IMG/VR virus record: IMGVR_UViG_3300031951_000001
Location: 258,373 to 322,372 of that record
Reading direction: 5' to 3' (one strand)
Length of the DNA stretch: 64,000 nucleotides
Made by a program: the position numbers and the translations under genes. Shown here one piece after another: positions 11,248-35,416 of the stretch. How positions within the stretch are numbered: position 1 is the stretch's first letter; the number at the start of each line of letters is the position of its first letter. The notes beneath the pieces are model-generated. The model did no database searches, was not told the DNA's origin, and saw nothing but the letters and a program-made list of their open reading frames with translations.

Positions 11248-11261
11248 AAAAAGTTTTTCTA

Positions 11262-11269
11262 TATTTATA
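11262..11269 (+). promoter_or_regulatory. TATTTATA putative late-promoter motif
   Basis: Intergenic, just upstream of ATG 11274. Confidence 0.5.
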
Positions 11270-11273
11270 GACA

Positions 11274-13679
11274 ATGGGATATATACTCAAAAATACGTCA
11301 GGATTAATAAATACAAAACTTACTGACGCAGGACGAAAAAAATTATCACAAGGTAAATTCAATATTACCTATTTTCAAATAGGTGATAGTGAAGTTTCGT
11401 ACAATGGACTTGAGGATTTTTACAATCAATTTGACACAAATATTCTTGAAGCCGGATTCAACGACCATAATTCTGCCGGAGTACCACAATCAAACAAACA
11501 GTACGTAAAATACCCTTATTATGTTGATGGTAATGGTGGAAACACCTATGGAATTCCTTACATGGATTCAATAGTAAGTCCTGTGTATAATACGGCAGTA
11601 ATGAGAGGATTTTTTAATGCTGATACGTCATTTTTACCAACCTCATGGACTGTTTTAACAAATGGGCAATATGTGGTTAATTCTAACTATGTATCAAATA
11701 TGTCAACTATCAATGGTACTAACACTATTGAGTTAATATATAACGCATGTAACGCTAATACTTTAAGATTACCACAAGCCGGTGATATTGTAACTATTTA
11801 CTACGATGGTGCCGGATTTAATAATTGTGGATGTAATCCGATACAATATCCACCTTCAGCAACTCCTCCACCGTCACCATCGGCGTCAGCTGCGGTACCC
11901 GAACCATTCCCATGTTTAGTTACGCCAACACCTACCCCATCAAACCCACCATGTCCTGAACCAACACCAGTGCCATTATGTCCTCCTGAACCGGTTGCCA
12001 CTTGTGAGATGACAATGTCAAGTTGTTATCATATTTTAACTTATAGAATAGTAGAAGTGTGTGGTGGTAGTATAGTTTTAGATAGACCGGCACCCGATTT
12101 TACAGTATTTAATAGTTCATGCTATGCTAGAATATTAATATATCCACCTAACATGACGGAGATATATGATAGTTACACACCACAAGCCCATTGGAATGAT
12201 GATGTAATCAATTTTGAATCAATATGTGGTTATGACCAATTTGATGTTAAAATATGGAATATGAATATTCCTTGGTCTGAAGACCCTGCCGGATTAATAC
12301 CTTCTTTATACAAAGGGTATTCCTATTTTAATTCAAGAAGTTATATTGGGTCAAAAGAATTCTTTGGTTATATGTCAACAAGCGGACAAACTGATAGTAG
12401 TTCAGTTTATTTTTATAATTCATTTGATGATAGGATAACAATTACCCCAGAAGAACAAAAGGCTATTGCAATTGTCCATTACACAAATAAAACCATAGAT
12501 TTATTTTATGGTGAAAAATTTGCAATGGAGTCAATTGACCCTGATAATCCGGTAGAAACCACGGGACAAGCAAGAAACTTCAAAGTACATCTCCCATGGA
12601 TTATGTGGCATAAAAATCCTAATTGTTGCCAAGGACAAACATTTTATGTTGACCCCGAAGGATTCGACAATCTAAATTTATTCCAAGTTCATTATCTAAC
12701 GTCTAACAAGAATGAGGATATGAACGACCCTGGCATGAGATATTATCATTTATGGGACACTAATGCGAATGATGATGGATACCCAAGCAGAGTCGGTAAA
12801 GTATTCCCTGACCATAAGTTGGTTATTTTTGACGATGATGAGATAATTGCGGCTATGTCCTATAAATCGAATAGAAACTGGACTTTACCGGCACCTAGAA
12901 TTTCATTAGTTGCACCTAATACTTGTGGTGATGATAATGCGTCAACAACAGGAATATTATCAGGTAGTAATCAAACAATGTATATTACATACAGATTTAC
13001 TAACAATGTTAATTTTACAAATTCATTACACTGTAATTATTATATTAGACAACAAGGACCTAATTTAGATTGTGGTAACCCAATATCACAAAATGTGAGT
13101 GTAAGATTTGGTCCTGAGTTTCCGTGTTTATCATGTGTAGGGTGCGGCGGCGGATGTGTTATGACATCAGGGTTCTTTGCTGAAAATATTGAAATAATCT
13201 GTCAAATAGTTGAAGGAAATCAAAGACCAATTCCTGACGAATGGAAAATAATTGATTTTACATCTCAAATAAGTAATACAATTGTAGATGGATGTATTTT
13301 ACAAAGTGGATTAACCGCATCTACATTTGTAATCACTCAAGAATTATATGACGCCGCTGATTATTATAATCTCAACGATTATATTCCTATGGTTAGTTTA
13401 AACCCATCTGGTCAAACCTTAAATTTTGGTGATGAGTATTATTTCTATGGTAATATAGAAACGGATATTCAAGCAACCATTTATGAGATGAGGTATAAGG
13501 TTAATTTGAGTTTCTCTGAATTTTTGGTACCGTCTAATCCTACTTACAATGGTGGTAGTAGTTACATTACCGACATTGGTCTTTACGATAATGAAAAAAA
13601 TCTTATGATTATATCGAAAATGCAGTCACCTGTATTAAGACAGGGTATTCAGCAATTTTTGGTAAAATTTGATTTTTAA
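11274..13679 (+). CDS. Tail-collar/baseplate fibre-attachment-like protein with a large insertion
   Basis: N-term 'KLTDAGRKKLSQG...ITYFQIGD' and C-term 'ITDIGLYDNEKNLMIISK' resemble the two ends of phage tail-collar fibre (DUF3751-like) domains; Pro/Cys-rich middle. Confidence 0.55.
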   Translation: MGYILKNTSGLINTKLTDAGRKKLSQGKFNITYFQIGDSEVSYNGLEDFYNQFDTNILEAGFNDHNSAGVPQSNKQYVKYPYYVDGNGGNTYGIPYMDSIVSPVYNTAVMRGFFNADTSFLPTSWTVLTNGQYVVNSNYVSNMSTINGTNTIELIYNACNANTLRLPQAGDIVTIYYDGAGFNNCGCNPIQYPPSATPPPSPSASAAVPEPFPCLVTPTPTPSNPPCPEPTPVPLCPPEPVATCEMTMSSCYHILTYRIVEVCGGSIVLDRPAPDFTVFNSSCYARILIYPPNMTEIYDSYTPQAHWNDDVINFESICGYDQFDVKIWNMNIPWSEDPAGLIPSLYKGYSYFNSRSYIGSKEFFGYMSTSGQTDSSSVYFYNSFDDRITITPEEQKAIAIVHYTNKTIDLFYGEKFAMESIDPDNPVETTGQARNFKVHLPWIMWHKNPNCCQGQTFYVDPEGFDNLNLFQVHYLTSNKNEDMNDPGMRYYHLWDTNANDDGYPSRVGKVFPDHKLVIFDDDEIIAAMSYKSNRNWTLPAPRISLVAPNTCGDDNASTTGILSGSNQTMYITYRFTNNVNFTNSLHCNYYIRQQGPNLDCGNPISQNVSVRFGPEFPCLSCVGCGGGCVMTSGFFAENIEIICQIVEGNQRPIPDEWKIIDFTSQISNTIVDGCILQSGLTASTFVITQELYDAADYYNLNDYIPMVSLNPSGQTLNFGDEYYFYGNIETDIQATIYEMRYKVNLSFSEFLVPSNPTYNGGSSYITDIGLYDNEKNLMIISKMQSPVLRQGIQQFLVKFDF

Positions 13680-17271: not shown

Positions 17272-19545
17272 ATGGCAGCACCAACAACACCTTGTGCATA
17301 TACAACCCTATGCGTCTATGATACAGGATTTCCACAATGGGACGACACCTATACTAGGTCAGGAAGTTATAATGGTAACTACTATTATATAGGTAATACA
17401 AACGGATATGTAATTTTTTTAAGTGATAACGGATGGTGTCTTTCTGATTATATTGATGGACAATGTTTTTTGAGCGGTAAGTCATGTTACAGAACTTGTC
17501 CTGATTTTTGTGATGATTATTTTACCAACGGAACTTGTCCCCCACCAGAACCCCCACCACCTGTTAACCCTTGTAATATAATTGATTTTGATGCTATATT
17601 CAATTGCGATGTACCATCACCCACACCACCACCTACACCTCAATGTGGTGATAAAATAACAATTTCTGCGACTTCACCAACTTCAACAATTGAATTTGAA
17701 CCTGATACTGATATTGTTTATACTAATCAAGGTACAATATTCCATAGCCCTTTTAATTTTAATGGTACTAGTCCCGGTAATATATATTTGGCGGTTTCTA
17801 CAACTCAACCGGTGTGGAAAAGAATTGATTCTACTGATGGGCCATTAAATAGAACTGGATTGTGGACCAATCAACCTAATGATAGACCTTACGACACTTG
17901 GTTAGGATTTACTGTTTGTATAAATGTTTCTGAAACTAAAACTTATTGGGTTGGATTAGCGGGGGACAATAATTTTAGAATCTCTATTGATGGTCAAACT
18001 ATTGTAAATACAATAAGCGGACCTTATGATGGTGATACATTTGCCTTTATTTTTTGGCATGTATATCCAATAACATTAACTGCAGGAGACCATGTTGTTG
18101 AATTATTTGGATTAAATAATGGGGCTTCCGGTGCGTTTGGTTGCGAAATTTATAACAACACTATTGATGAATTGACCGGAGCAACCCAAGTTTCTGATTT
18201 GGATATAATATTCACATCCGCTGGCCAAACAGAGGCGACTATAGTGCAGAATTTATCAGGTCAATATCTGGCCAGTGGATATACATGTCCTGTAGGATAT
18301 ACTTTTGACCCCTGTACCATTTCATGTTTTACAATTATACCTCCATGTTCCCCAACACCAACTCAAACTCCCACCGCAACAGTATTCTGCCCATTATCGG
18401 TTAATGCCTCAATTTCGTCTTACACTCCAACACAAACACCAACACCGACCCAAACTCCTACATTACCTGAAACGATTACCCGAGGATGTGGATTTTTGGG
18501 TGACGTTACCTTTAATACTATAAATTCTGTTATAGACTGTCCGGTAAGTTTAGAATTTCAAGATTGTTACAATGGATTAACATATTACACAACTAATTCA
18601 CTCTCAAGGCCTGAAGGTGGCACTTTAGAAAAGTTTATGATTTATCAGGCGAATATTGACGGAATAAGAAAGTGTGTTTCTTTCGTCGGTATAAACCAAA
18701 ACATTATAGGAAGTAGTAATGTTACTCTTATCTCTAATTTGATAGGGTATTCTAATTTAGGTGAATGTACTAATTGTTTAGGAATACTTACCCCGACCCC
18801 AACACCAACACCATCAATAACCCCAACAATTACATTAACTTCGTCATCTAATAAACCAGCACCACCGGCACCATCACAAAGCCCAACCGTTACCCCTTCT
18901 AAACAAGTATTATATTATACGTATGAAAGATGTGGTACTTACACAAGAGTTTGTCAACCAATGCCGGCAATCTCAAATCAATCAATAGGTACTGTATTCA
19001 AAGTAGGTAATGCGGGACAATTCGCGAATACTTGTTGGGAGCTAGTTAGTGTAACATCTGTTTGTAATACATCTAACCCTAATTATAATACAATCACATA
19101 TACTACAAACGCATTTTCGATAATCAATAATGTTTTATATACCGACTGTAGTAAGTGCTCATCCAATACACAAACGGCCCCACCCCAACCACCACCACCT
19201 AGTTTAACGCCTACAAGAACTCCAACACCTACTAAAGCACCACAATCGGCACCAATACAAGCGTGTAAACCCCATACGGTTATAGTATCAACAGGACCAT
19301 GTAATATATGTTACCATCCGGCTGTTTCTGCGTTATACCCACTACCTGCCAATACGACTATGTATTCTCCGAGCGACTTTTTAATACCTGGTTCTCAGTT
19401 GTACATAAACTCAACCTGTACAACACCCATACCTCCTTTCCAATACATCAAAGCCCTTTCATCATCAGGAGGTGCAATAACTCCGACTATGATATCTTTT
19501 GGTGGAGGAATAATAAGTAATTACTCATGTTCGATATGTTATTAG
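17272..19545 (+). CDS. Cys-rich, Pro/Thr-linker protein with a PA14-like domain
   Basis: 757 aa; 'YWVGLAGDNNFRISIDGQTIV...ITLTAGDHVVEL' resembles PA14; TP tracts. Confidence 0.55.
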   Translation: MAAPTTPCAYTTLCVYDTGFPQWDDTYTRSGSYNGNYYYIGNTNGYVIFLSDNGWCLSDYIDGQCFLSGKSCYRTCPDFCDDYFTNGTCPPPEPPPPVNPCNIIDFDAIFNCDVPSPTPPPTPQCGDKITISATSPTSTIEFEPDTDIVYTNQGTIFHSPFNFNGTSPGNIYLAVSTTQPVWKRIDSTDGPLNRTGLWTNQPNDRPYDTWLGFTVCINVSETKTYWVGLAGDNNFRISIDGQTIVNTISGPYDGDTFAFIFWHVYPITLTAGDHVVELFGLNNGASGAFGCEIYNNTIDELTGATQVSDLDIIFTSAGQTEATIVQNLSGQYLASGYTCPVGYTFDPCTISCFTIIPPCSPTPTQTPTATVFCPLSVNASISSYTPTQTPTPTQTPTLPETITRGCGFLGDVTFNTINSVIDCPVSLEFQDCYNGLTYYTTNSLSRPEGGTLEKFMIYQANIDGIRKCVSFVGINQNIIGSSNVTLISNLIGYSNLGECTNCLGILTPTPTPTPSITPTITLTSSSNKPAPPAPSQSPTVTPSKQVLYYTYERCGTYTRVCQPMPAISNQSIGTVFKVGNAGQFANTCWELVSVTSVCNTSNPNYNTITYTTNAFSIINNVLYTDCSKCSSNTQTAPPQPPPPSLTPTRTPTPTKAPQSAPIQACKPHTVIVSTGPCNICYHPAVSALYPLPANTTMYSPSDFLIPGSQLYINSTCTTPIPPFQYIKALSSSGGAITPTMISFGGGIISNYSCSICY

Positions 19546-19608: not shown

Positions 19609-22600
19609 ATGGATACTATAAGTTTATTTAACATATCGGGTGTTAATCCTCCATTCATAATATACATATGTGATATTTACGGCGATAATTGTGTCGAAGT
19701 TGCTATAGTAAATAACTTTGTTCCCCCGATTATTACACTTAATGTCCCTATAGTTTTCCAAGACTCGGCGGCGGTTGGTGTTAAAATAATAACCGCGGAC
19801 GGATGTGAAAGATTAGAAACTGTTTTATGTAGTATTATAACCACCCCAACCCCTACAATATCGATAACACCAACGATTACCCCTACAATCACCCCAACTA
19901 TTACTGAAACACCTACAATCACCCCAACTATTAGTATTACCCCAACTATTACCCCGACGGTTACTGAAACACTCACACAAACTCCAACCAATACACAAAC
20001 TCCAACAATAACTAATACGGAGACACCAACTAATACGGTAACACCAACCTTAACCCCAACACCTACGAATAATGGTTGTTTTTGTTACTTTGTTGATATT
20101 ACCCAGTTAGATATCAATAGAGCTAGCGGTAATACTGAAACAACTGCAAATGGTGTTGTTAATTTAGTGTATTATGATTGTTCCGAGGGTATTATAACCT
20201 CTGCAATTACTGGAAGTGGAATTTATTATATCTGTAACAATCCATCGGAAACTATAGATGGGTTTAGTATTCCGGTACTATTGAATTACAGTCAAAATAA
20301 TTTTAGTTATAGTAATGTATTCACACCATTATCATTCTCTAGTACGTTTTTTACAGATTATTCAACTTGTTCACAAAGCGGGGATTGTGTTTTGCCAAGT
20401 AGCACCCCAACACCAACTCCAACCCCTACAGTAACTAATAATGGTTGTTTTTGTTATTTTGTTAATATTTCGGCAATTGATTTAGCAAATGCTATAAACA
20501 ATACCAATCCCTCATTTGATGGTGTTGTAAATATTCTATACATAGATTGTAAAGGGGTACTACAAAGACTTACTATATCTTCTCCTGGTATAACTGTTAT
20601 ATGTAACAATGTTCAATCTTCTATTAACTCATTCGGAATAGATGTTTATATAACATATTCTAATAACGATGAGTCTTATAATAATAGAAATGATATAATC
20701 CAAAGTTTTTATACCACTGATAATACCAATTGTACTGAGGCTTCTTCATGTGTTCCACCAACCCCTACTTCTACTAAAACACCAACCGCCACCCCAACAG
20801 GTACTGCGACGATAACCCCTACAAATACATTAACTCAAACACAAACACCCACTACAACATCAACATCAACGCAAACACCGACCGCAACACCAAGTCCATT
20901 CCCATCAAGAACTCCAAGTAATAGCCCAACACCCACAGTAACACCAACTGTAACACCATCACTAACTGTTTCAGGTTTCCCAACAGAAACGCCAACCTCG
21001 ACCCAAACACCTACCGTTACTCCAACAGTGACCCAAACACCCACTAATACTTTAACATCAACACCAACAGTTACTGAAACCCCGACCAATACTGTCACAC
21101 AGACTCTGAGTCCAACTAGTACCGTAACATCAACATCAACTCAAACACAAACTCAAACTCCTACAGAAACAGTTACTAATACCCCTACAGTGACTCAAAC
21201 ACAAACTCAAACTGTTACAATCACAGAAAGCCCAACGAATACCCCCACAATAACTGAAAGCCCAACAAATACCCCAACAATCACATCAACTCCTACTGAA
21301 ACATCTACTCCGACATCTACCAATACTAATACTCCGACCAGTACGAGTACATTAACAGTGACCCCAACAACAACTCAAACTGTCGCATCTACTAATACAC
21401 CAACACAGACACCTACCGCAACTGTTACTGAAACTCAAACACCAACGCCAACTAATACTAACACATCAACACCTACTAATACTAACACATCAACACCTAC
21501 TAATACTGTAACCGTAACTGAAACTAAAACACCAACGCCAACCAAAACACCAATTAATTGTAATTGTATTGAGTTTTTCGCCGCTGCGGGTGGAGCTGTT
21601 ATATCTTATAATAAATGTGATGGAACTTCAGTTACTAATTTATTCGTACCTGGAGGGTCTACGGTTAAGGATTGTATTATAAATGAAGAATATACAATAA
21701 CATCTGGTGTAATAGTAACTAATTTTGGTTCATGTATCGACAATTCATGTCCTACTCCGACACCAACACCTACCACCACCGAGACCCCAACAAATACGGT
21801 AACACCAACTCCGACCACTACTGAAACTCCGACTAGTACAGAGACCCCAACAAATACCGTTACCCCAACTCCGACTATAACAGTCACTCCAACTAAAACT
21901 GAATTTAAACCTCTAAACTTATGGTTTAGTGGTTGTTGTCAACCAGGACAAATCATTCAATTATATGAAGTTCCTGGTGAAATAGGTCAAACCATAATTG
22001 AAGGAGATGTTTATTATATTGAATCACCACAGTTCAAGGGATGCGCGACTAATATAGCTCAAACTCTAACGGATTTACAATACTTGTATTTGAATATTAC
22101 TAATCAATTCACTTGCCAAGATTGTATAGATTCAAATCCTTGTCCAACATCTACACCTACTCCGACACCAACCGAAACTCCAACTCAAACACCAACTCAA
22201 ACACCAACTACAACTCAAACGCCAACCGAAACAAATACCCCAACAGTAACTCAAACACAAACAAGTACAATCACTAGTACTCCAACAAACACGGTTACTA
22301 ATACTCAAACTCAAACAGTTACACAGACAGTGACTGTTACTGAAACGATAACAAGTACTCCTACTCAAACAAATACAACAACTAATACTCCAACTCAAAC
22401 CAGTACAGTTACCAACACATCGACCCCAACATCAACAGAGACATCTACGCCTACGCCAACCAACACTACAACATCTACACCTACAACAACAGAAACACCC
22501 ACACCTACCCCAACACCAACGACAACACAAACACCAACCATAACCTCAACTTCAACACAAACACCAACAGTCACACCAACTAATACTATTACCGTTACGC

Positions 22601-24054
22601 CTTCAACAATATTCTGTGTTGACTGTGTTGAATCAGGTTACACATATGTATTCAGTTGTGCTCCAACACCTTCTATCACTAAAACGCCAAGTGTTACCCC
22701 AACGATAACCTACACACCGACAGTCACCCCAACCAATACAAGTACCCCAACAAAAACACCTACCCCAACTCAAACTAATACTGTAACTGTAACAATAACT
22801 AAAACTTCGACACCTACAAACACAACAACTGTTACTAACACTACAACACAGACACCAACACCAACTGAAACACCGACCGCAACGGTGACTAGTACACAAA
22901 CACCAACTGTAACAGTTACTAGTACTTCTACACAAACACCAACGAATACTCAAACACCTACTACTACACAAACACCAACCCCATCAATTACTGAATATAA
23001 GCCATCATTCAGACACTTTAGTGCATGTTGTTCTCCACATATAGTATTCAGAGTTTATGAGATACCTGGATTGACAGCCACAACCATTGTTGAAGGTAAT
23101 ATTTACTATATTGAGACAGGTGTGTTCAGTGGTTGTGCAACAAGTATTGCCGAAGTATTTACACCAAATAATTATTTGTTTGTTGGTGTGACGGCCCAAA
23201 CTGATTGTGATGAATGTACGTTCTCAAATCCATGTCCGACACCAACCCCTACGCAAACCCCTACACAAACAGAAACTCCAACACAAACCCCAACACCGAC
23301 ACAAACTCAAACATCTAGCCCTACTAACACCCCAACTTTAACACCTACCCCAACTAAAACTCCGGCGCCAACTTGTGATTTGATTGTTACTTTGGTGAAT
23401 ACCGAATCAATTAGTTCAAATACTGAAATTAATATTTGGTATGATGATTCAGGCTCTATGGGGTCTACACGAGCTCCTTTGGAGCAAATGATTGCACCTG
23501 GTGGAATACTTGAAACTTGTTTGATAGGTGTTTATAACAATGATATTACGTTATATAATGAGAGAGTTCAATTCTTCACAATGCAAACTGGCCCATTAGG
23601 TAATGTAAATGAAAGATTTGTTGCGTGTTTAGCAACTTCGAGAAATGCTGGAAGAGCAGTTGATACTAGCGTTGATTTAGTAATCAATTTGGTTTTCCAA
23701 GACGAGAGTGGTGGAGCGTATGTTACAGGTGGAACTTTTACGCCTACAACTGTATTAGACCCGGATTATGGGACTGACGTTACAACTTTGAGAAACCTCT
23801 TATCTTCAATTGATTATGGATTAAGAGGTGTTGTATTTGCGGTAATAAATGAGGGACAACCTACCTTCCAAGACTTGGTACAAACAACTTTTGTAAATGC
23901 GGGAATATATTCACCACCTAACAACTTAAGTGATTATTACTTGACCAATTTAAACTACCAATTAGGTATAAACGATGGAGATACTTCGACTTATTATTAT
24001 AATTTGATAATCTCCACACTTAATTCTTTGGGTATCGTAACACCGGGATGTTGA
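19609..24054 (+). CDS. Mucin-like Thr-Pro repeat protein with Cys-rich modules and a C-terminal vWA-like domain
   Basis: 1481 aa; long TPT tracts; MIDAS-like '[10 protein letters not shown]' and 'LVFQDE' near the C-terminus. Confidence 0.7.
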
Positions 24055-24067
24055 TATATATAAAGGG

Positions 24068-27000
24068 ATGCCAACAGCACTAATACAATCGGTAAATTAT
24101 GCGGGACAATATGGGGATATAACATTCAATCCCCAAACCGGCGGCACCGTATCTGTAGGTGTGCAACTTTTACCATTTAATTATGTTGCCGATTATGTAT
24201 ATGGGGTTTACGTAGTTTGTTTTTCAGCCTTTAGTGTTTGCTGTGAATTCAATTTACTTGCACCTACACCGACCCCTACCGCAACAATAACTAAAACGCC
24301 TACCATAACTCCAACTGAAACTGTAACTCCCACAAAAACACCAACTCCGACAATAACCCCCACAATGACCATGACTCCAACCCCATCAACAATATTCTGT
24401 GTTGATTGTGTTGAGTCAGGTTATACGTATGTCTTCAGTTGTGCCCCAACTCCATCTATAACAAGAACGCCAAGTGTTACACCAACAATTACTTATACAC
24501 CTACTCAAACATCAACTAAAACTCCTACTCAAACACCAACGACGACTCAAACACCAACAATTACCAAGACATCAACTCAAACACCAACAATTACCAAGAC
24601 ATCAACCCCAACTAGAACGCTTACTCCAACAGGAACTAATCCTCCATCTGTTCCCGAATGTGCGGTAATATTTAATTCATTACAAAATGTATTTTTCTAT
24701 GATGTTGACACGGACACTACTACACAACTTATAGTTCCTGACACAGTTGGTTCCGCGACAAATGATATTGCCCATACTTCAAGTAAGTTGTGGATGGCTA
24801 GTGCCAGTGAGATATACGAATGGGATATTACTTTGAGTCCGTTTACCGCGGTATTTAATCGTGTAATTACATTACCATCAGGCATAGGTCCTGGGTTGGG
24901 GGCAATTAATAACACAACCTTGATTGCGGTCCAAAGCGGGGGTAATCCAAAACAGGTTGTTTCGGTAAATATTACTACAAATACTGCGGTATTTACAACT
25001 CTATTCCCGATGTTGATAAACAGAGGTGTTGCGGGAGATATTATTTTAACAACAACAAATAAGGTTATTATTACGACTAACGCGACCGCGGCACCATTCG
25101 GACAATTCATAACACAATATAATTTCTTAAATGGTGACCCTGAAGTCGATATTCAATTGAATCCAACCATCACCCAGCCTTGGGGCATTTTTCAAGATAA
25201 TGGTGAAATTTATATCATGGATGGTAACGAAACTAATAATGTATTCCATATTGATAAAAATTATCCGTACACAATTACATTAACAGGTGATACAGGATAT
25301 TCGGTGTATGGGGCTTCTCAATTACCAAATTGTTTAGATGTAAACTTCATACCTCAAATAACACCAACACCAACCCAAACACCAACCCAAACTCCTACAA
25401 CGACCCAAACACCAACAGTAACTGTAACTGAAACAATTACTAATACCCCAACTAATACCCCAACCCCAACTAAGACACCCGTGTCCTGTGACTGTTTTGA
25501 AATAACCGCGGTTGGGAATAATGCGGTTATTGACTATTTTAAATGTGGTAGTGAAGGGGTTTCGGTAAGAAAATTAATAGAACCTGCAAGACCATTTAAA
25601 GTTTGTTTAGAAAATAGTGGAGTTACTACTCTTTCAGGGGTAACTCAAATTAGTAATTTTGGTCCTTGTATTGACGGAGAATGTGCTAGCCCAACCCCAA
25701 CTCCTACAGTCACCCAAACACCAACAAATACATTAACACCTACAATTACCCCAACAAATACATTAACACCTACAATTACCCCAACTGAAACCCAAACTCC
25801 CACAATTACCTCAACTAGTACTCAAACCCCAACTAGTACTCAAACTATAACTCCTACACTTACCCAAAGTCCAACACCAACAGTAACTCTTACTAATACC
25901 GTGACACCAACAATTACTGAAACACCAACAAGTACGGCAACACAAACACCAACAACTACCACAACCCAAACCCCAACAAGTACAGAAACACCAACCACAA
26001 CCCAAACTCCAACAAGTACACAAACACCTACCACAACCCAAACTCCAACCACAACCCAAACTCCAACAAATACAATGACTGTAACTCCGACTCCGGTTTG
26101 TATAGACGGATGTTCAGTTTTATATGTCGATAGTGAATCATTAATTTATTCTTATGACTATAATACAGAAACGTCTACAGTAATTTTTGACCCCAAGGCA
26201 ACAGTAAGAGATATTGCTAACACTAGCTCAAGGTTATTCATTACTATCGTAAATAGAATTCAAAGATACAGTTTTTCAACTTGCCCTGTGAGTGTTACAT
26301 TAATTGATGAAATAACTAGACTTTTCTTGGGTGATGGTTTATTTGCAATAAATGATACCACATTAATTATAACTAGTACACAAGCAATTGGTCAAGAAAA
26401 CGTACAAGAATTAAACTATATAACAAATACAGTAACCCCTAAATTCTCACTACCAACCGGTTATTCGGTAAGAGGTGATTTTATTCTAACAACCGGCGGA
26501 AAATTCATAGTTTCAATGTTCCAAGGATTGAGTAACTATATTTTACAATATGACTATTCAACTGGTGAACAAGAAGTTTTATTCCAAGTTTCTCAAATTA
26601 TTGCCGGATTCTTTGAATTTGGTGGAAATATCTATGCTGTGGATACTTCAGGTATTGTTTATCAAGCAATTTTAGATTCTCCATGGGGGTTAGTTTCTAC
26701 AACTTTAGACCCATTAACTTTTACAGGGGTTATTAAAGGTACATCCCAAGAGTTATCGTGTTTACCTACAAATTTTAACATAGTAACCCCAACCCCAACT
26801 CCTACCCAAACCCCAACTCCTACTGTCACCGTTACCGAAACACCTACTATGACGGTAACTGAAACTCCGACTCAAACGGAAACTCCGACTCAAACCCCAA
26901 CCAATACTGAAACACCTACACAAACTTCTACCCCAACACCAACACCTACTTTAGATTGTTTTTGTTACACATTTGTAAACACCAGTTTATTAGACAAACA

Positions 27001-30000
27001 AAATGTAAGTGGTAAAGATTGTAATAATATAAATTTTGAGTACTCATTACAAATTTCAGGTTCTGAAGGTGACACCGTAAGTTTATGTGCGTCATCAAGT
27101 TTAGTTTTAGACCCATTTATTGCGGTATTCAATAACGGAGTTTGCGAAGGATTTTGTGGCACCTCAACACCAACACCAACACCGACAGAGACTCCCACAC
27201 CAACCATTACTGACACTCCTACACAAACCCCAACAATTACCGAAACAAACACACAAACCCCAACTCAAACTCCAACAAACACTGTTACAGAAACATCCAC
27301 ATCAACACCGACCCCAACTCAAACTGAAACACCGACAAATACTGTAACCTCTACTCCAACAAATACAGTAACCTCTACCCCAACGATAACATCTACATCA
27401 ACTCAAACTCCAACGGTTACATCAACTCCAACTCCATCAATTACCGAGTACAAGCCAGCTATAAGAACATTTAGTGGATGTTGTTTCCCATTTGAAATTT
27501 TTAAACTTTATGAAATACCTGGATTAACCGCTAACACAATAACTGAAGGTACAGTTTACTACATTGAATCCGGTGTATTTAGCGGTTGTGCTACAAACAT
27601 TGCCGAAACATTCACACAAAATAATTATCTATTTGTTAATATTAGTGCCCAAACTAGTTGTAGCGGTTGTTCGGCATCCTACCCATGCCCGAGCTCAACC
27701 CCGACACCTACTGTAACATCAACACCAACAGTTACTCCAACGATTACCTCGACTCCAACGATTACCTCGACCCCAACTCAAACTGAAACCCCAACTCAAA
27801 CTGAAACCCCAACTCAGACACAAACTTCAACAGTAACATCAACACCTACAGAAAGCCCAACTTCGACACAAACTCAAACTCAGACACAAACTCAAACTGT
27901 AACACCAACAAAAACGTCAACCCCAACAAGAACACCTATTGAGTGTGTTTGTTATTCTATAACCAATATAGGTGAATTTTTTGGTAGTTATAACGGAATT
28001 TTATGTAATGGTGGACCTTCAGGAGGAATACCAATAGGTCCTGGTGTAACATTTACCGCATGTTATGCTAAAGGGTCACTTCAAACTGTGGGAGGTACTT
28101 TAACATTTCTTGAGAATGGGTCTTGTGAGAACTCAATACTTTGTCCTACTAGAACTCCGACTCCTACAAGAACTGGTACCCCGACCCCGACTCCTACAAC
28201 TACTGAAACACCTACAAATACCGTAACGCCAACTACGACAACTACTGAAACACCGACTAGTACATCAACACAAACACCAAGTGTAACCAACACTATAACA
28301 TCAACACCTACTCAAACATTGTGTTGTACCTCATGGACACTATATGGAGGTTTAGGTCAATTACTCGATAATGGATTTGTTATTAAACCTCCTTTGAGGG
28401 TAGGGGATGATTTTGCATTGATACCTACAAATGTAGGCTCACCTGGTACTTTAGTTGGTCAAGTTTTGGAACTAATCAGTGTTAGCCCTCCACTATCGCC
28501 CCAATATTTTACAATTTTAACTGCTACGTTTAACCCTATAAATTCGGCCTACTTATTAACATTTACCCCTACTTTAACAATTAATTTGGGTAGTACCTTC
28601 CAGAGTATAATTTATAACATTTATCAGTCAGGAGGTACACAATTCAATGTTTACAATTGTGGAGGGTCTCTTACGACTTTGAATTTGAATAACAATGAAA
28701 TATTGGTCATTCCTTGTTCCTATGATGTTCAGGTTATATCAGGATTCGGGTATGCTGAGTCTGACCCATCATGTGTATGTGTCACTCAAACTCCAACACC
28801 AACATTGACACCTACTGTGACATCAACAATAACTCAAACCCCAACAAATACAGTAACCGTTACTCAATATACTTGTAATTGTTATTTTATAAATGTGCCA
28901 GACATTAGAGATGGAGTAAATTTAGTATTTTTAGATTGTTTGGGTAGTTTGATTTCAATAGCACCAAATAATTTTGGAAATTATTGTGTTAGAGAAATAA
29001 TTGATTATGGTTCAGGTACCGCCGAACTTGTAGGACTATGTATAGATGGAAATTGTCCAACACCAACGCCAACTCCAACTCAAACCGAAACCCCAACCCC
29101 AACTGAAACTCCAACCCAAACAATTACCCAAACTCCAACTGTTACTCAGACCTCGACACCAACTGTTACTCAGACCTCGACACCAACTGTTACTATCACG
29201 GAATCGGCTACACAAACTCAAACACCAACACCGACTGAAACTCCAACTAATACTTTAACACCGACTGTGACAATTACTGAATCTGTTACGCCAACAAGGA
29301 CATTAACACCAACCAAAACTCAGGCACCATGTTTATCTAGCTGTGATGTGTTGTTATTAGACAATGTCGGTAGAGTTTATATATACAATTCAGTCACTAA
29401 CTCTCCACTGTACTTAGGTATTGATGGTCCTGATGGTTCCTTCGATATTGCACATACAAATAACAAAATATGGTTAAATAGAGGAACTTCATTATATGAA
29501 TATGATATAATATTATGTCCGTTCTCGGCGACATTCAGCAGAGAAATTTCAGGTTCAACGGCATTTAGTGCTGGATTATTTGCAATAAATGACACTACTT
29601 TAATTGCTAATAATGGAGCGACCCCTTCTTCAATTTTAGAGATTGATGTTTCGACTAATCCTTACACAGTTACAACAAAATTCTCTTTATTACCAGGAAG
29701 AAGAGTTTCAGGTGATTATGTTCTAACAAATTCAGGTAAGTTAATTGTTAGTAATTTTTCGGGAACAAACCCAAATGCACCCACTGGTGTTTACATAACA
29801 CAATATAACTATATAACTTCGGCAACACCCCCTGTAGATAACAATGTTGATATATTAATATCCCCAACAATTGTATTCCCATATGGGTTATATCAATATG
29901 GAGGTGGTTTCTATATTCTGAGTGCGAATGGTACACAATATACTTTAGACCTAAATCCTCCGTACACACTTACCGCGGCACCTACAGTTCCTTTACCTCC

Positions 30001-33000
30001 AAATACAATCAACGCCGCATATTTTGGTGCATCCCAATCCAACGGATGTTTCGACAATAACATAGTACCTGTGTCACCAACACCAACCTCAACTCCAACC
30101 CCGACCCCTACCCCAACTGCAACAATAACACAAACCCCAACTATAACACAGACTTCAACACCTACACCAACAATAACTTCTACAGTAACACAGACTCCAA
30201 CCCAAACTCAAACACCAACTTCAACAATTACTGTTACACCAACTCAAACAAGTACGGTTACATCAACCCCAACTGTTACATCAACCCCGACACCAACCAT
30301 AACTGAATACAAGCCGGCAATTAGAACGTTTAGTGGATGTTGTTTCCCATTTGAAACCTTTAAGATTTTCGAAATACCTGGATTAACCGCAAATTCAATA
30401 ACTGAAGGCACGGTTTATTACATTGAGTCCGTAGGATTTAGTGGATGTGCGACAAACATTGCAGAGACATTCACTCAAAACAATTACCTATTTGTTAACT
30501 TGAGTGCTCAAACAAGTTGTAGTGGTTGCTCGACAAATTACCCATGTCCAAGCTCAACACCAACACCTACAGTTACATCGACTCCTACATTAACGCCAAC
30601 GCAAACCCAAACACCAACGCAAACCCAAACACCAACTGAGACATCCACTCAAACACCAACTGAGACATCCACTCAAACACCAACCCAAACTCAAACTTCA
30701 ACACAAACACCGACTAATACACAAACATCAACCAACACCCCTACCACAACAGTAACACCAACTTTGACACGTACTCCTGATACTTGTAATTGCTACACAT
30801 TCTTTAACATATCAACTTCACAAAGTTTGACTGTAGATTTTATTGATTGTACAGGCTTACAAAACCAAATTACAATAAATTACGGAAATAGTGCTCAAGT
30901 TTGTGTTAAAAATAATATTTTCTCGGGTACCCCATCAGGGGCTTTAGTATCATTCTTAAATGGTGATTGTACAAATGGATGTCCGACAACTACCATACAA
31001 GCTTGTAACCCATTTGTAGTGAATGGAACAAATAGAATTATTTATACTTATGACCCAATAACTAACACACAAATTCCATTACCTATTAATACCGAATCTG
31101 TTTCTATATACGATATTGCAACAAATGATAACTATTTATGGATATATGGTAATTTCGCAACATTAGGAAATGGTATAAAAGAATATTTTATAACAACATC
31201 CCCATTTACATCAAGTTTAAATAGATTTATATCGGGTTCTACACTATATCAATCCACAAGAAATGGTTTAGCGGTTTTAAATAACACCACATTAATAACG
31301 GCTTCAGGTACGGCTGGTAATGTGATAGTGAGTTTAAATATTTCATCAAATACTTGGGTTGCAACTCCGTTATTTACTTTACCAACAAATAGAGTCCTAA
31401 GGGGTGATTTAACTTATACAAACACAGGTAATATTATTGCGTTAACTTATAATAATGTTGCGGGTACCGGGTCTTTTTTAACACAGTTTGATTTATTTGG
31501 TAATCAGGAATTAGAATTCCAAATAGGTAATTCTGTTGAAGGATTTGGTTTGTTCATGTATAATTCACAAATATTTACGGTTGCCTCTTCATCGGCGTCT
31601 CCCGCTGTAGTTAGAAGAGATTTGAACTTCCCCTATACATCTTTAACAGTAAACAATATGACAATAACAAATGTTGGGTTTGCCCAACCGTTAAGTTGTT
31701 TAAATGTTAATTTCATAGGAGTTACCCGAACACCAACACAAACCCCAACACCTACCCCAACACCTACTACCACTAAAACTAATACGCCTACATCAACGCA
31801 AACCCAAACCCAAACTCCAACTAGAACCTCAACCCCAACAAACACCCAAACTCCTACTATTACAAGTACCTCCACAATTACTCCTACCGTTACAAGAACC
31901 GCCACAATTACTCCTACCGTTACAAGAACATCAACGATTACTCCTACCGTTACAAGAACATCAACAATTACTCCAACAATAACACAAACGGCAACCCAAA
32001 CGAATACCCCAACAGTAACACAAACGGCAACTGTTACACAAACTGCAACTCAAACTCCTACACCTACCGAAACTTCTAATCTGTTTGCTTGTACTTGTTA
32101 TAATTTCTTCAACACATCAAATAACCAACCCGGAACAGTTACTTATTATAATTGTGATGGGGTATTTAGTTCTGTAACGGTTAGTGCCACTTCATATGTT
32201 CAATTATGTGTTTCAGGTAATTCAACAAATCCATTATACACCGCAACGACCCAAATTACTGCTATAGATGAGTTAGGTGATTGTACAGTAAGTTGCCCAA
32301 CAATTAATTTGGATAGTTGTATTTCCTTTTTAGCTGGGGGGCCGGGTAACATCATTCAATCATATGATTTTCAAACTAATACCACAACTTTTTTACCCAT
32401 ACCAAATAGACCATGGTCAATGCTTGGAATTGCAAATACTTCAAATAAACTTTGGGTTCACGGTACTTATCTTGGTTTCACCAGTGGAGGTATAAGAGAA
32501 TGGGATATAACATTTTCACCGTTTAGTGCAACATATAATGGCAGAACTATAAACATACAAAGTAATACTATATTACCTAATAGTAATGCATGTGGTTTAG
32601 TTGCAATCGATAATTTTAATTTATTAAGTGTGTCAGGTGCTACTGCAGGGTCCCAAAGTGTGGTTAATGTTGATATTTCAGATACCATAACCAATAACGC
32701 GGTATTTACGAAACTTTTTGATTTACCAAGTAATAGAAGAATATTAACTGATTTAGTTTTTACTCAAACTGGTAAGATTATAATAATGACCCAAACAACT
32801 ACCCCTGTCAAAATATTTATTACTCAATATGATATACTTGGAAACATTGAGGTTGATGTTCCATTATTCACATCAGGAATAGATGCAAATAGTGGATGGT
32901 CTATTTTGATTAATTCTAATAATTTGTATATTGTAAGAGCTACTACTCCTGGAGAAATTTATCAGGTAAACTTAACTTCACCATATTCGGCAACCTTACT

Positions 33001-35416
33001 TTCTGAAAGTTTACCAGTTACTGTGACGGACCAATCCCAATCACCAGAGTGTATCACAGTTGAGTTTATACCTGTTACAAAAACACCGACTCCAACACCT
33101 ACTAAAACTCCAACACCTACCGTGACTATGACGATAACGCCAACTTCAGGTGCAACAGAAACACGGACTCCGACGCCGACTACCACTCAAACTTCAACAC
33201 CAACAATAACATCTACGATTACTCCGACAATAACGGCAACACCAACAAGAACGGCGACTCAAACACCAACAATAACAAGAACGGCGACTCAAACACCAAC
33301 AATAACAAGAACGGCGACTCAAACACCGACAATAACAAGAACGGCGACTCAAACACCGACAAGAACTGCGACACCAACAAGAACACCAACTAGAACGGCA
33401 ACAAATACTCCATCGATTACCCCAACCATAAGTATAACTCCAACAATAACCTCAAATTTACCATGTAAATGTTTTAATTTTTACAATACAAGTGATACGG
33501 TAAATGGTACTCTTATATACACTGCTTGTAATTTAACAGTTAGTTCTACAACGGTATCGGCTAATTCATTTGTACAATTGTGTGTAAATTTAAGCGGATA
33601 TAGTGGGTCATCACAAATAACATTTGTTAACCAAGTTGGTTCATGTGTAAATGGTTTTTGTCCTAACATATCTATAAATTCTTGTGATTTGTTATCGGTT
33701 AAAAAAGAACCTTCTGGTCCGACTAATGGTCTTTGGCAGATTATGAGTATTAGAAACGAAAGTCTTTTGTATTTGCCGGTTTCTGGTAGAACTGTAGGAA
33801 CCAACGCTTTAGCGAGAACGTCTAATAAAGTTTGGGTACTAGGATTTTTTACGGCATTAGGTGGTTCTAGAATAAGGGAATACTCAATTACCCAAAATCC
33901 TTGGTCTGCGGTGGTGACTAATAACTATACATTACCGACAAATTTGCCGTCTGTTATCGACAATGGTATGGCGGCAATCGATGATGAGAATTTTATTGTT
34001 GGGTCCGGAACTGCATTGAATGTTATTGCAAAATTAAATGTTTCAGGTGGAATTTTATCATCTACTAAAATTATAGATTTAATATCACCATTTACGGTTT
34101 TTGGTGACATGATTTATACTACAACCAATAAAGTCATAGTTGCGGTTAAAAATACAATTAATACTAACATATGGCAAATTCACCAATATGATGTTAATGG
34201 GACTTTTGAACTGGCGGTAGACGTTTCATCTATATCTTTATTTAATTCCGGAATAAATTTCGCGGTAGTTAATAACCAATTATATTTATTACCACATAAT
34301 CAAACATATAATAATTATTATTTAATTAATTTAAATAATCCTTACAATACCACAATTCAGTCGGCTCTTGGAGGTAGTGCCCCAAATGACGTTGCTCAAA
34401 ATCCTGAATGTATTAATATTCAGTTTATCCCTTCTACACAGACACCAACACCAACAAGAACAAAAACTCCGACACCAACAAGAACTCCAACAAGAAGTGC
34501 AACACCAACAAGAACTCCAACAAGAAGTGCAACACCAACAAGAACTCCAACAAGAAGTGCAACACCAACAAGAACTCCAACAAGAAGTGCAACACCAACA
34601 AGAACACCAACAATAACCATGAGTCCGTCGATTACACCAAGTCGAACAGTAACAATGACACCTTCATCTATTGGTATCTATACTCAACCATTGATGGTAA
34701 GTTTTTCTGGAACATCTACTGTAATATCAAGATACGATGTAACAACAAATACTATTACAACTTTAGATGTACAAAGTTCCGGTATTTTACCAAATCAAGA
34801 TATTGCATGTACTCAAAATAAATTTTGGTTATCAAATCAGGGGTCTGGTAACATAATAAAAGAATATACTTATACCGCGTCACCTTTCAATTATGTGTTG
34901 AATAGAACTTTGAATATACCAGTTACATTGACTGATGGATTAACTGTAAGGACTGTGGGAGGTATTGAATATTTGATTGGATGTACAGGTAATACAACTA
35001 TTGTTGAAATGGATATATCATCAACAACGGCCATAGTTACCGATAAATTTGATTTACCTCTTAACAGAACCATAGGTGCTGATATGATGTATACTAATAC
35101 TGGAAAATTAATAGTTGCCAACTATTCAGGTGGTAATACAACAGTCGGATTTATGACGCAGTATAACTATGAAACAAATACTTTAGAGATTGATAGGGCA
35201 TTACCAACTACTTATGCTGCTGGCGGTCAAAAAGTTTATTTTGTATCTAATAATAATATCTATAGTACTAGTATCTCTGCTAGTCTTTCGGTTGTTTATC
35301 AATGGAATACAGATAGTAATATTAACAATCCACTTCCATTACAATCCTTCGAGTTACCACTACTTCGTGGAAGCGCTCAACCACAAGAATTCATAAACAT
35401 TAATTTCACCTCATAA
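24068..35416 (+). CDS. Giant modular fibre/adhesin-like protein: Thr-Pro linkers, seven ~230 aa beta-rich modules and small Cys-rich modules
   Basis: 3782 aa uninterrupted ORF; recurring 'DIA.T..KLW...I.E(W/Y).IT..PF.A...R.I' and 'GD...T..GK.I' modules. Confidence 0.8.
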   Translation: MPTALIQSVNYAGQYGDITFNPQTGGTVSVGVQLLPFNYVADYVYGVYVVCFSAFSVCCEFNLLAPTPTPTATITKTPTITPTETVTPTKTPTPTITPTMTMTPTPSTIFCVDCVESGYTYVFSCAPTPSITRTPSVTPTITYTPTQTSTKTPTQTPTTTQTPTITKTSTQTPTITKTSTPTRTLTPTGTNPPSVPECAVIFNSLQNVFFYDVDTDTTTQLIVPDTVGSATNDIAHTSSKLWMASASEIYEWDITLSPFTAVFNRVITLPSGIGPGLGAINNTTLIAVQSGGNPKQVVSVNITTNTAVFTTLFPMLINRGVAGDIILTTTNKVIITTNATAAPFGQFITQYNFLNGDPEVDIQLNPTITQPWGIFQDNGEIYIMDGNETNNVFHIDKNYPYTITLTGDTGYSVYGASQLPNCLDVNFIPQITPTPTQTPTQTPTTTQTPTVTVTETITNTPTNTPTPTKTPVSCDCFEITAVGNNAVIDYFKCGSEGVSVRKLIEPARPFKVCLENSGVTTLSGVTQISNFGPCIDGECASPTPTPTVTQTPTNTLTPTITPTNTLTPTITPTETQTPTITSTSTQTPTSTQTITPTLTQSPTPTVTLTNTVTPTITETPTSTATQTPTTTTTQTPTSTETPTTTQTPTSTQTPTTTQTPTTTQTPTNTMTVTPTPVCIDGCSVLYVDSESLIYSYDYNTETSTVIFDPKATVRDIANTSSRLFITIVNRIQRYSFSTCPVSVTLIDEITRLFLGDGLFAINDTTLIITSTQAIGQENVQELNYITNTVTPKFSLPTGYSVRGDFILTTGGKFIVSMFQGLSNYILQYDYSTGEQEVLFQVSQIIAGFFEFGGNIYAVDTSGIVYQAILDSPWGLVSTTLDPLTFTGVIKGTSQELSCLPTNFNIVTPTPTPTQTPTPTVTVTETPTMTVTETPTQTETPTQTPTNTETPTQTSTPTPTPTLDCFCYTFVNTSLLDKQNVSGKDCNNINFEYSLQISGSEGDTVSLCASSSLVLDPFIAVFNNGVCEGFCGTSTPTPTPTETPTPTITDTPTQTPTITETNTQTPTQTPTNTVTETSTSTPTPTQTETPTNTVTSTPTNTVTSTPTITSTSTQTPTVTSTPTPSITEYKPAIRTFSGCCFPFEIFKLYEIPGLTANTITEGTVYYIESGVFSGCATNIAETFTQNNYLFVNISAQTSCSGCSASYPCPSSTPTPTVTSTPTVTPTITSTPTITSTPTQTETPTQTETPTQTQTSTVTSTPTESPTSTQTQTQTQTQTVTPTKTSTPTRTPIECVCYSITNIGEFFGSYNGILCNGGPSGGIPIGPGVTFTACYAKGSLQTVGGTLTFLENGSCENSILCPTRTPTPTRTGTPTPTPTTTETPTNTVTPTTTTTETPTSTSTQTPSVTNTITSTPTQTLCCTSWTLYGGLGQLLDNGFVIKPPLRVGDDFALIPTNVGSPGTLVGQVLELISVSPPLSPQYFTILTATFNPINSAYLLTFTPTLTINLGSTFQSIIYNIYQSGGTQFNVYNCGGSLTTLNLNNNEILVIPCSYDVQVISGFGYAESDPSCVCVTQTPTPTLTPTVTSTITQTPTNTVTVTQYTCNCYFINVPDIRDGVNLVFLDCLGSLISIAPNNFGNYCVREIIDYGSGTAELVGLCIDGNCPTPTPTPTQTETPTPTETPTQTITQTPTVTQTSTPTVTQTSTPTVTITESATQTQTPTPTETPTNTLTPTVTITESVTPTRTLTPTKTQAPCLSSCDVLLLDNVGRVYIYNSVTNSPLYLGIDGPDGSFDIAHTNNKIWLNRGTSLYEYDIILCPFSATFSREISGSTAFSAGLFAINDTTLIANNGATPSSILEIDVSTNPYTVTTKFSLLPGRRVSGDYVLTNSGKLIVSNFSGTNPNAPTGVYITQYNYITSATPPVDNNVDILISPTIVFPYGLYQYGGGFYILSANGTQYTLDLNPPYTLTAAPTVPLPPNTINAAYFGASQSNGCFDNNIVPVSPTPTSTPTPTPTPTATITQTPTITQTSTPTPTITSTVTQTPTQTQTPTSTITVTPTQTSTVTSTPTVTSTPTPTITEYKPAIRTFSGCCFPFETFKIFEIPGLTANSITEGTVYYIESVGFSGCATNIAETFTQNNYLFVNLSAQTSCSGCSTNYPCPSSTPTPTVTSTPTLTPTQTQTPTQTQTPTETSTQTPTETSTQTPTQTQTSTQTPTNTQTSTNTPTTTVTPTLTRTPDTCNCYTFFNISTSQSLTVDFIDCTGLQNQITINYGNSAQVCVKNNIFSGTPSGALVSFLNGDCTNGCPTTTIQACNPFVVNGTNRIIYTYDPITNTQIPLPINTESVSIYDIATNDNYLWIYGNFATLGNGIKEYFITTSPFTSSLNRFISGSTLYQSTRNGLAVLNNTTLITASGTAGNVIVSLNISSNTWVATPLFTLPTNRVLRGDLTYTNTGNIIALTYNNVAGTGSFLTQFDLFGNQELEFQIGNSVEGFGLFMYNSQIFTVASSSASPAVVRRDLNFPYTSLTVNNMTITNVGFAQPLSCLNVNFIGVTRTPTQTPTPTPTPTTTKTNTPTSTQTQTQTPTRTSTPTNTQTPTITSTSTITPTVTRTATITPTVTRTSTITPTVTRTSTITPTITQTATQTNTPTVTQTATVTQTATQTPTPTETSNLFACTCYNFFNTSNNQPGTVTYYNCDGVFSSVTVSATSYVQLCVSGNSTNPLYTATTQITAIDELGDCTVSCPTINLDSCISFLAGGPGNIIQSYDFQTNTTTFLPIPNRPWSMLGIANTSNKLWVHGTYLGFTSGGIREWDITFSPFSATYNGRTINIQSNTILPNSNACGLVAIDNFNLLSVSGATAGSQSVVNVDISDTITNNAVFTKLFDLPSNRRILTDLVFTQTGKIIIMTQTTTPVKIFITQYDILGNIEVDVPLFTSGIDANSGWSILINSNNLYIVRATTPGEIYQVNLTSPYSATLLSESLPVTVTDQSQSPECITVEFIPVTKTPTPTPTKTPTPTVTMTITPTSGATETRTPTPTTTQTSTPTITSTITPTITATPTRTATQTPTITRTATQTPTITRTATQTPTITRTATQTPTRTATPTRTPTRTATNTPSITPTISITPTITSNLPCKCFNFYNTSDTVNGTLIYTACNLTVSSTTVSANSFVQLCVNLSGYSGSSQITFVNQVGSCVNGFCPNISINSCDLLSVKKEPSGPTNGLWQIMSIRNESLLYLPVSGRTVGTNALARTSNKVWVLGFFTALGGSRIREYSITQNPWSAVVTNNYTLPTNLPSVIDNGMAAIDDENFIVGSGTALNVIAKLNVSGGILSSTKIIDLISPFTVFGDMIYTTTNKVIVAVKNTINTNIWQIHQYDVNGTFELAVDVSSISLFNSGINFAVVNNQLYLLPHNQTYNNYYLINLNNPYNTTIQSALGGSAPNDVAQNPECINIQFIPSTQTPTPTRTKTPTPTRTPTRSATPTRTPTRSATPTRTPTRSATPTRTPTRSATPTRTPTITMSPSITPSRTVTMTPSSIGIYTQPLMVSFSGTSTVISRYDVTTNTITTLDVQSSGILPNQDIACTQNKFWLSNQGSGNIIKEYTYTASPFNYVLNRTLNIPVTLTDGLTVRTVGGIEYLIGCTGNTTIVEMDISSTTAIVTDKFDLPLNRTIGADMMYTNTGKLIVANYSGGNTTVGFMTQYNYETNTLEIDRALPTTYAAGGQKVYFVSNNNIYSTSISASLSVVYQWNTDSNINNPLPLQSFELPLLRGSAQPQEFININFTS
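33245..33366 (+). repeat. Near-perfect 30 bp tandem repeat (~4 copies) encoding TRTATQTPTI
   Basis: Unit acaagaacggcgactcaaacacc(a/g)acaata. Confidence 0.85.
34472..34605 (+). repeat. Perfect 30 bp tandem repeat (4 copies plus a partial) encoding TPTRTPTRSA
   Basis: Unit acaccaacaagaactccaacaagaagtgca. Confidence 0.9.

Follow-up and report, generated by a model that had tools for sequence, protein, structure and literature searches.

Turnover of linker-bounded modules in the giant, putative adhesin genes of a T4-like jumbo phage

Two adjacent giant genes of a T4-like jumbo phage known from metagenomes (322 kb), here termed B and C, appear from comparison with related loci to evolve by swapping whole modules. 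They lie in a 64-kb stretch of DNA, the whole of which was analysed and is referred to below as the window, and which forms the last part of the 322,372-bp IMG/VR virus record IMGVR_UViG_3300031951_000001 (positions 258,373 to 322,372; completeness rating 100%). Gene B (19609..24054 of the window) encodes the protein P0001 of 1481 amino acids (aa) with the module order Bn-N-N-X-F-V-F-Bc, and gene C (24068..35416) encodes P0002 of 3782 aa with the order Cn-V-P-X-P-X-F-X-U-X-P-F-XP-XP-XP-P; upstream of both, gene A (17272..19545, 757 aa), delimited from its open reading frame (ORF) and by segmentation, carries the modules A1-A2-A3-A4-A5 on short Thr-Pro linkers. All of these genes and their modules are on the plus strand. 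The modules of B and C are separated by Thr-Pro spacers of 19-270 aa, such that linker codons account for 1790 of the 5263 codons of the two genes (~34%). We consider it probable, at roughly 0.7, that these genes belong to a beads-on-a-string adhesin toolbox that evolves by whole-module swaps, with the linkers acting as permissive junctions.

Repeated modules and their order in relatives

When the proteins were segmented at Thr-Pro-rich stretches and the resulting pieces compared all against all with blastp, each of the repeats described in an initial annotation of this DNA was recovered. Four F modules, two in B (B_F1, 21904..22149, aa 766-847; B_F2, 22996..23241, aa 1130-1211) and two in C (C_F1, 27449..27694, aa 1128-1209; C_F2, 30308..30553, aa 2081-2162), lie at the places claimed for them and share 46-89% identity (E 1e-26 to 5e-57), the uppermost value belonging to the pair C_F1 and C_F2. 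The V mini-module, a peptide of 28 aa with the pattern CxxC...C, is identical at 28 of 28 residues between B (22597..22680, aa 997-1024) and C (24380..24463, aa 105-132), or at 41 of 42 when the comparison is extended, and the underlying DNA differs at 12 of 84 nucleotides, all of them synonymous. The N module is duplicated within B (20065..20394, aa 153-262, and 20434..20754, aa 276-382; 42% identity, E 8e-31), with a 20-nt exact match at 20068/20437, and eight X modules of ~60-70 aa (Cys-x-Cys...Cys...Cys...Gly-x-Cys) are present, one in B and seven in C, in which five Cys and one Gly are invariant across all copies. The largest repeat was absent from the initial annotation, and consists of seven P modules of ~230-260 aa in gene C, which are 25-38% identical to one another.

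Diverged relatives were drawn from IMG/VR by a pattern scan built on the alignment of the F modules, and their full loci were then compared with the window. Module order is not invariant among them: it differs in each of the relatives that we denote G1, G2, M and L047, which upholds the combinatorial shuffling proposed earlier. Relative to the window, three diverged relatives exhibit ~11 gains, losses or replacements of whole modules, all bounded by linkers, together with one insertion within a module. In G1, gene B reads Bn-N-N-X-F-V-V-F-Bc, with two V modules, and gene C reads Cn-X-P-F-U-[new 330 aa]-P-F-XP-XP-P, having neither V, P1, X2 and X3 nor one of the XP composites, and carrying an unrelated 330-aa module in the slot that C_X4 (28865..29050) occupies in the window; G1 gene A is without A2. 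In G2, gene B (...X-F-V-F-A2-[Laminin_G_3]) ends in a different manner, with Bc replaced by an A2 module that is 66% identical to the A2 of gene A in the window, followed by a Laminin_G_3 domain, and gene C retains the window order, except that a propeller fills the X4 slot and that the second F module has a domain of ~95 aa nested in it. This nested segment (11044-11550 of locus L017) lies between two conserved halves of F, and is thus an insertion away from any linker. The fourth relative, L047, has the orders A1-A3-A2 and Bn-P.

The tree of the F modules comprises two clades (support 95/94). Gene C of the window has one F variant, with 75-89% aa identity among its members, at both of its F positions, whereas G2 has this variant at the first position only and M at the second only. 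The other type, 37-47% identical to the first, occupies the first position in M, the second in G2 and all positions in G1; at the place of C_F1, M holds an F that is 35% identical to the window copy. With G1 included, all four combinations of type and position exist, such that replacement by recombination is required. Moreover, the modules B_F2, C_F1 and C_F2 of G1 are 90-98% identical, and the proportion of differing synonymous sites (pS) is 0.27-0.38 among them, compared with 0.6-0.9 to their orthologs. They use the same codon at 86 of 121 (54.7 expected) and at 90 of 115 positions (expectation about 53), which constitutes direct evidence that F modules of G1 have been exchanged between the giant genes B and C. 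The apparent exchange tract includes ~30 aa of the upstream linker and ~10 aa of the downstream linker.

A further line of evidence comes from M (locus L019, Ga0114364_1017731), a contig of 9.4 kb that is collinear with gene C and a closer relative of the window. Per-module synonymous divergence (dS) between M and the window is bimodal, with values of 0.16-0.24 for P2, X3, X4 and X6P5, of 1.1-1.6 for F1, U, P3, F2, X5P4 and X7P6, and in between for X2 (0.70) and for the start of P7 (0.59). Gene C of M is split into three ORFs and has two deletions, being without the counterpart of window positions 29920-30229 and part of P7, which may reflect either a degraded gene or an assembly problem. The gain, loss and replacement of modules would, on the mechanism that we propose, proceed via recombination among co-circulating relatives as well as among paralogous copies in one genome, including B with C.

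A putative adhesin toolbox and its alternatives

On the reading that we favour, each protein would start with a conserved N-terminal domain, either Bn (19609..19836) or Cn (24068..24256), that is probably an anchor to the virion; Bn is N-terminal in every other protein that bears it, and Cn in 12 of 14. Behind the anchor there would be a series of short modules rich in disulfides (F, X, N, V and U) and of beta-propellers (P), with Thr-Pro spacers between them, and at the end an adhesive tip: a putative vWA-like domain in B, a propeller in C and a ConA-like lectin in a relative. From this layout, in which a conserved N-terminus is followed by a variable array and interchangeable tips, we infer a virion-anchored adhesin or receptor-binding protein, and B and C may be fibres, as the initial annotation called them. 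Their content is likewise adhesin-like, given the beta-propellers, the lectin tip, the lead to vWA, and neighbouring genes with SprB repeats and Hoc-like immunoglobulin (Ig) repeats.

An AlphaFold model of P built on a 20-sequence alignment is a beta-propeller of ~20 strands (pLDDT 94.9). Similar folds are the Kelch and YWTD propellers of the PDB and, in the ESM Atlas, clusters carrying DUF6923 and DUF4394 (TM 0.76-0.78), and language-model features point the same way. The bacterial lipoproteins and surface proteins that bear DUF4394 or DUF6923 are thus alike in predicted fold, yet P has no match to a Pfam hidden Markov model (HMM) up to E=1, and is present seven times per chain, often fused to X. 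The best viral structural match is to uncharacterised proteins of Virus NIOZ-UU157 (BFVD A0A7S9SU35 and A0A7S9STY0; TM 0.82, 26% identity, E 1.7e-15). At the C-terminal tip of B, Bc (23371..24051) contains the motif D-D-S-G-S (the MIDAS form DxSxS) and scores 0.89 against VWA clusters in a comparison of atlas features, which we regard as a lead only, Pfam giving no match. The tip of G2 gene B is a Laminin_G_3 (ConA-like lectin) domain by Pfam (E 8e-15; 55.7 bits, with the cut-off at 27.6). The model for F is weak (pLDDT 68.7, with one of five models above 50): Foldseek returned no match for it at E<=0.001, and the best VIA-align result (Z 3.9, to small beta-barrels) is under the level that unrelated folds reach.

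Among known systems, the gp37/gp38 adhesins of T-even phages, which are shuffled by recombination at conserved motifs, behave most similarly. In these phages, the exchanges that make chimeras tend to fall in or near conserved motifs that separate variable segments (PMC3157838, citing Tetart et al. 1996, 1998). The likeness is that T4-type phages carry hyperplastic, modular adhesin genes in which C-terminal specificity parts are swapped, and mosaic evolution of the gp37/gp38 type is present here in the differing C-terminal tips of gene B in the window and in G2, in whole-module replacements and in mosaic dS. However, B and C have no sequence relationship to these adhesins by Pfam, PHROGs or tblastn against 50,697 phage records. 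Moreover, the units here are complete globular domains, 25-330 aa long and carried on flexible Thr-Pro spacers, whereas in gp37/gp38 they are loops of hypervariable sequence flanked by glycine-rich motifs, or else parts of a trimeric fibre. The genes studied here also form a toolbox of at least 11 members, and their location is not that of a recognised tail-fibre cluster.

A second parallel concerns the linkers. Bacterial cellulases and xylanases with a PT box have runs of Pro and Thr that connect independently folding modules, the order of which varies among related proteins. B and C share with them the Pro/Thr linkers between globular modules, but contain no catalytic glycoside-hydrolase domain and no carbohydrate-binding-module family by Pfam; they are also phage-encoded, far larger and one-third linker. 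No pertinent publication emerged when the literature was searched for phage fibre proteins with Thr-Pro or PT linkers.

Several points weigh against an adhesin toolbox that evolves by module swapping. Genes A-C lie among replication genes, outside any recognised tail-fibre cluster, none of the modules has a characterised homolog, and the F model is of low confidence and gives no fold match. In addition, the window genome itself appears to be free of recent internal exchange, and the data are compatible with either a selection filter acting on junctions or a true hotspot. Finally, M is short and may be a chimera of strains produced in assembly, in which case its mosaic signal would be overstated; the evidence from G1 and G2 is independent of M.

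The first of these points also lends itself to a different account of function, under which the proteins are not tail or host-recognition fibres but decorations of the capsid or tail, or secreted or host-surface proteins, for example a decoration that binds glycans and so keeps the phage attached to mucus or particles. The flanking replication and recombination genes agree with this, as do the Hoc-like Ig and SprB repeats of the neighbours, which are typical for decoration or adhesion, and the absence of similarity to known tail-fibre families. Were it true, module turnover would reflect habitat and not host range. We nevertheless judge it rather unlikely, because a conserved N-terminus, a variable distal array and swapped C-terminal tips are the usual layout of a receptor-binding protein.

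A bolder version of the adhesin reading may be entertained tentatively, and is in our view possible but doubtful: that these genes represent an apparatus for host recognition or adhesion, not described before, in T4-like jumbo phages of fresh water, a multi-gene toolbox filling ~15% of the genome, in which new domain families stand on length-conserved Thr-Pro stalks and the modules that bind receptors change places within and between genes and are traded among co-circulating phages. If so, specificity would be combinatorial, and the Thr-Pro stalks would have two roles, as spacers in the protein and as joints in the gene at which reassortment does no harm. Phages change hosts through mosaic receptor-binding genes, and in the best-studied cases the exchanged units are loops or fibre segments; here, on the main reading given above, they are whole small domains without a known family, reassorted on long Thr-Pro spacers in ~11 genes of one jumbo phage. 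Several new and rare domain families are defined in the process, and these are candidates for glycan or surface binding.

Thr-Pro linkers and the route of exchange

We suggest that the linkers are most likely permissive junction zones, which need not be preferred sites of DNA exchange: surviving junctions would pile up in them because any in-frame crossover within a linker yields a folded product. On the sequences compared here, linkers thus appear to be where viable junctions survive, and not demonstrably where exchange starts. The initial annotation had gone further, proposing the Thr-Pro coding DNA as a recombination substrate. Spelled out as a rival, this mechanism would make that DNA the preferred substrate, with repetitive ACN-CCN tracts pairing between non-allelic linkers and crossovers there building new orders. 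In its favour, it is whole, linker-bounded modules that change, and the best-resolved tracts end in linkers, namely the replaced F1 of M (edges 27435 and 27697) and both ends of the G1 tract. Yet junctions in linkers are predicted by selection alone, with no hotspot needed, and the breakpoints, which had been expected to fall in Thr-Pro tracts, do so only in part. Sliding identity together with a three-state HMM resolved 17 real transitions between the window and M, and 8 of these are in linkers, which make up 30% of the aligned length (binomial P 0.10, not significant). The remaining 9 lie inside modules, including those at 26712, 27038, 28054, 28930, 30993 and 31440.

Nor is there an excess of homology between linkers upon which such pairing could draw. 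The longest exact match between distant linkers is 23 nt, and the 12-, 15-, 18- and 20-mers that they share are as numerous as in a null of shuffled synonymous codons (at 20 nt, 11 observed against 11.1 expected), whereas the longest homologies between paralogs, which reach 28 nt in the window and 41-50 nt in G1, lie within F modules. Shared words being neither above nor below chance, recent homogenisation of the linkers and active avoidance of repeats were both rejected. What the linkers do contain is short tandem arrays (52 rows in TRF output, with periods of 12-72 nt), among them a 30-nt unit repeated 4.3 times at 33237..33366 and another repeated 4.7 times, with 99% matches, at 34472..34613. 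The latter array, the most perfect of them, is shorter by one or two units in two genomes that otherwise match the window at 99.97-99.99% identity, which demonstrates slippage or unequal exchange within a linker, and linkers would, on our reading, grow and shrink through slippage of 18-30-nt units. Copy-number polymorphism of perfect linker repeats is also what a recombination substrate would produce, but two of the four indels between near-identical genomes fall in module DNA (a frameshifting one of 79 nt in Cn and an in-frame one of 60 nt in P4), and overall we think it unlikely that Thr-Pro DNA is the preferred substrate.

The two module indels merit description in their own right. Window positions 24150-24228 (79 nt) are missing from a genome that is 99.99% identical (G003/L018), where the frame of C shifts past residue 27 and Cn is destroyed. 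The deletion has no flanking microhomology, and could be a natural knock-out, an N-terminal variant or an assembly error. The in-frame deletion of 60 nt (20 aa; window 31084-31143) lies within propeller P4 and not in a linker, and was found in a genome of 99.97% identity (G004/L014).

The lengths of orthologous linkers are conserved (r=0.95 over 20 linkers, against L016 and L017; for example 270 and 273 aa, or 159 and 160 aa). That length is maintained despite saturated DNA divergence and turnover of repeats suggests that spacing is functional and under selection. The occurrence of the same module at different positions in natural relatives offers a clean system in which to ask whether low-complexity linkers promote shuffling or only tolerate it.

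Selection on the modules themselves is evident from codon alignments. As had been proposed, the modules are under purifying selection, and this selection is strong, with ratios of nonsynonymous to synonymous substitution (dN/dS) of 0 for V (pS 0.58, dN 0), 0.05 for C_F1/C_F2 and 0.2-0.3 for B_F1/B_F2, B_F2/C_F1 and N1/N2. Synonymous sites of the window paralogs are near saturation (pS 0.55-0.87; dS ~1 for C_F1/C_F2), in keeping with a model in which strong purifying selection would hold the protein sequence of the modules and synonymous sites saturate. Between the V copies of B and C, codons coincide at 16 of 28 positions, compared with 12.6 under independent choice from the usage of the gene (P=0.12), and the identity of the peptide is therefore maintained purely at the protein level. 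Recent gene conversion of V was rejected on the same grounds, the DNA bearing no trace of exchange. For C_F1 and C_F2 there is a slight excess of shared codons (47 against 36.6 expected, P=0.006), and these two modules lie in the best internal DNA repeat of the whole genome (72% over 658 nt), a 110-nt terminal overlap aside. It might accordingly be argued that the repeats are ancient tandem duplications kept by selection, with no current shuffling or exchange between B and C, since the window paralogs are at or near saturation, V codon sharing is at the level of chance and no internal repeat of the genome is near-identical, but this is very improbable given that the F copies of B and C in G1 exceed chance codon sharing and have a pS below that of their orthologs, that the position of one F variant changes from genome to genome, that per-module dS between the window and M varies ~eightfold, and that module content is not the same across relatives.

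Remaining modules, rarity and genome context

Gene C contains the modules P1 (24641..25351), C_X1 (25478..25690), P2 (26093..26779), C_X2 (26951..27157), C_X3 (27935..28144) and P3 (29318..30067), followed by the composites X5-P4 (30779..31720), X6-P5 (32081..33067) and X7-P6 (33449..34429) and, as its C-terminal tip, P7 (34655..35413). P1 is the module to which the pLDDT of 94.9 given above refers. The U module (28310..28783, ~155 aa) is present in a single copy, and the only X module of B is at 21550..21744.

These domains are poorly represented in databases. Pfam gave nothing for the whole proteins B and C or for any single module, even at E=1; tblastn of genes B and C against the 50,697 GenBank phage records gave no match, and neither did megablast and tblastn of the neighbouring genes against GenBank phages. 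The only PHROGs match of P0001 and P0002 is phrog_15511 (function not assigned), which covers 10 stretches of gene C that are mostly Thr-Pro linker, indicating that similar low-complexity proteins exist in other catalogued phages. A word search using F (protein length 815-2590 aa) found one protein, and the metagenome scan gave 17 loci that contain F. Among 1.84 billion representative proteins, a full search with the F profile recovered it from only 77. These 77 proteins exhibit more than 30 module orders, in which F is mixed with X, P, N, U, A1, A2, A3, Bn, Cn and Bc.

HMMs built from the modules were used to search the source genome for a wider toolbox, and A, B and C appear, on the strength of these matches, to be members of a family of at least 11 genes that together span ~49 kb, or 15% of the genome. 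The further members sit in three clusters. A second giant gene (genome 189376-200502, 3709 aa, X-P-P-X-P-P-X-P-A2) and five more toolbox genes lie outside the window, at genome positions 161966-207726. Among the genes found are one of 1171 aa (genome 161966-165478) that ends in the lectin module capping gene B of G2 (E 8e-59 to the lectin-module HMM) and, elsewhere in the source genome, genes of 758 and 965 aa that each have Cn at the start, a Bn-X gene, and a gene of 1416 aa with P at its end. Inside the window, the large ORFs upstream of A-C carry SprB repeats and Hoc-like Ig repeats, and two of these also contain toolbox modules (a P propeller in ORF 5254-8742 and an X module in ORF 8773-11247), such that the toolbox extends past genes A-C.

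The genes that flank A-C encode a T4-type primase, an exonuclease, a RuvC-like resolvase and SbcCD, and the record includes a major capsid gene of the T4 gp23 type (215 bits, above the cut-off), the nearest relatives of which, at ~40% identity, are from Microcystis phage Mel-JY01 and Flavobacterium phage immuto. The region is not an assembly artefact, since it recurs at 99.97-100% identity in four assemblies made independently from other samples. Between window positions 20001 and 32000, GC skew falls to -0.35 and AT skew rises to +0.19 (C over G, A over T), because ACN (Thr) and CCN (Pro) codons fill one third of the coding sequence; the skew is not a replication signal. Lastly, the final 110 nt of the window (63891-64000; genome 322263-322372) recur at genome positions 1-110 as a direct repeat of 99% identity at the two ends of the record, as is characteristic of a complete assembly that is circular or circularly permuted, even though the IMG/VR entry lists the record as linear.

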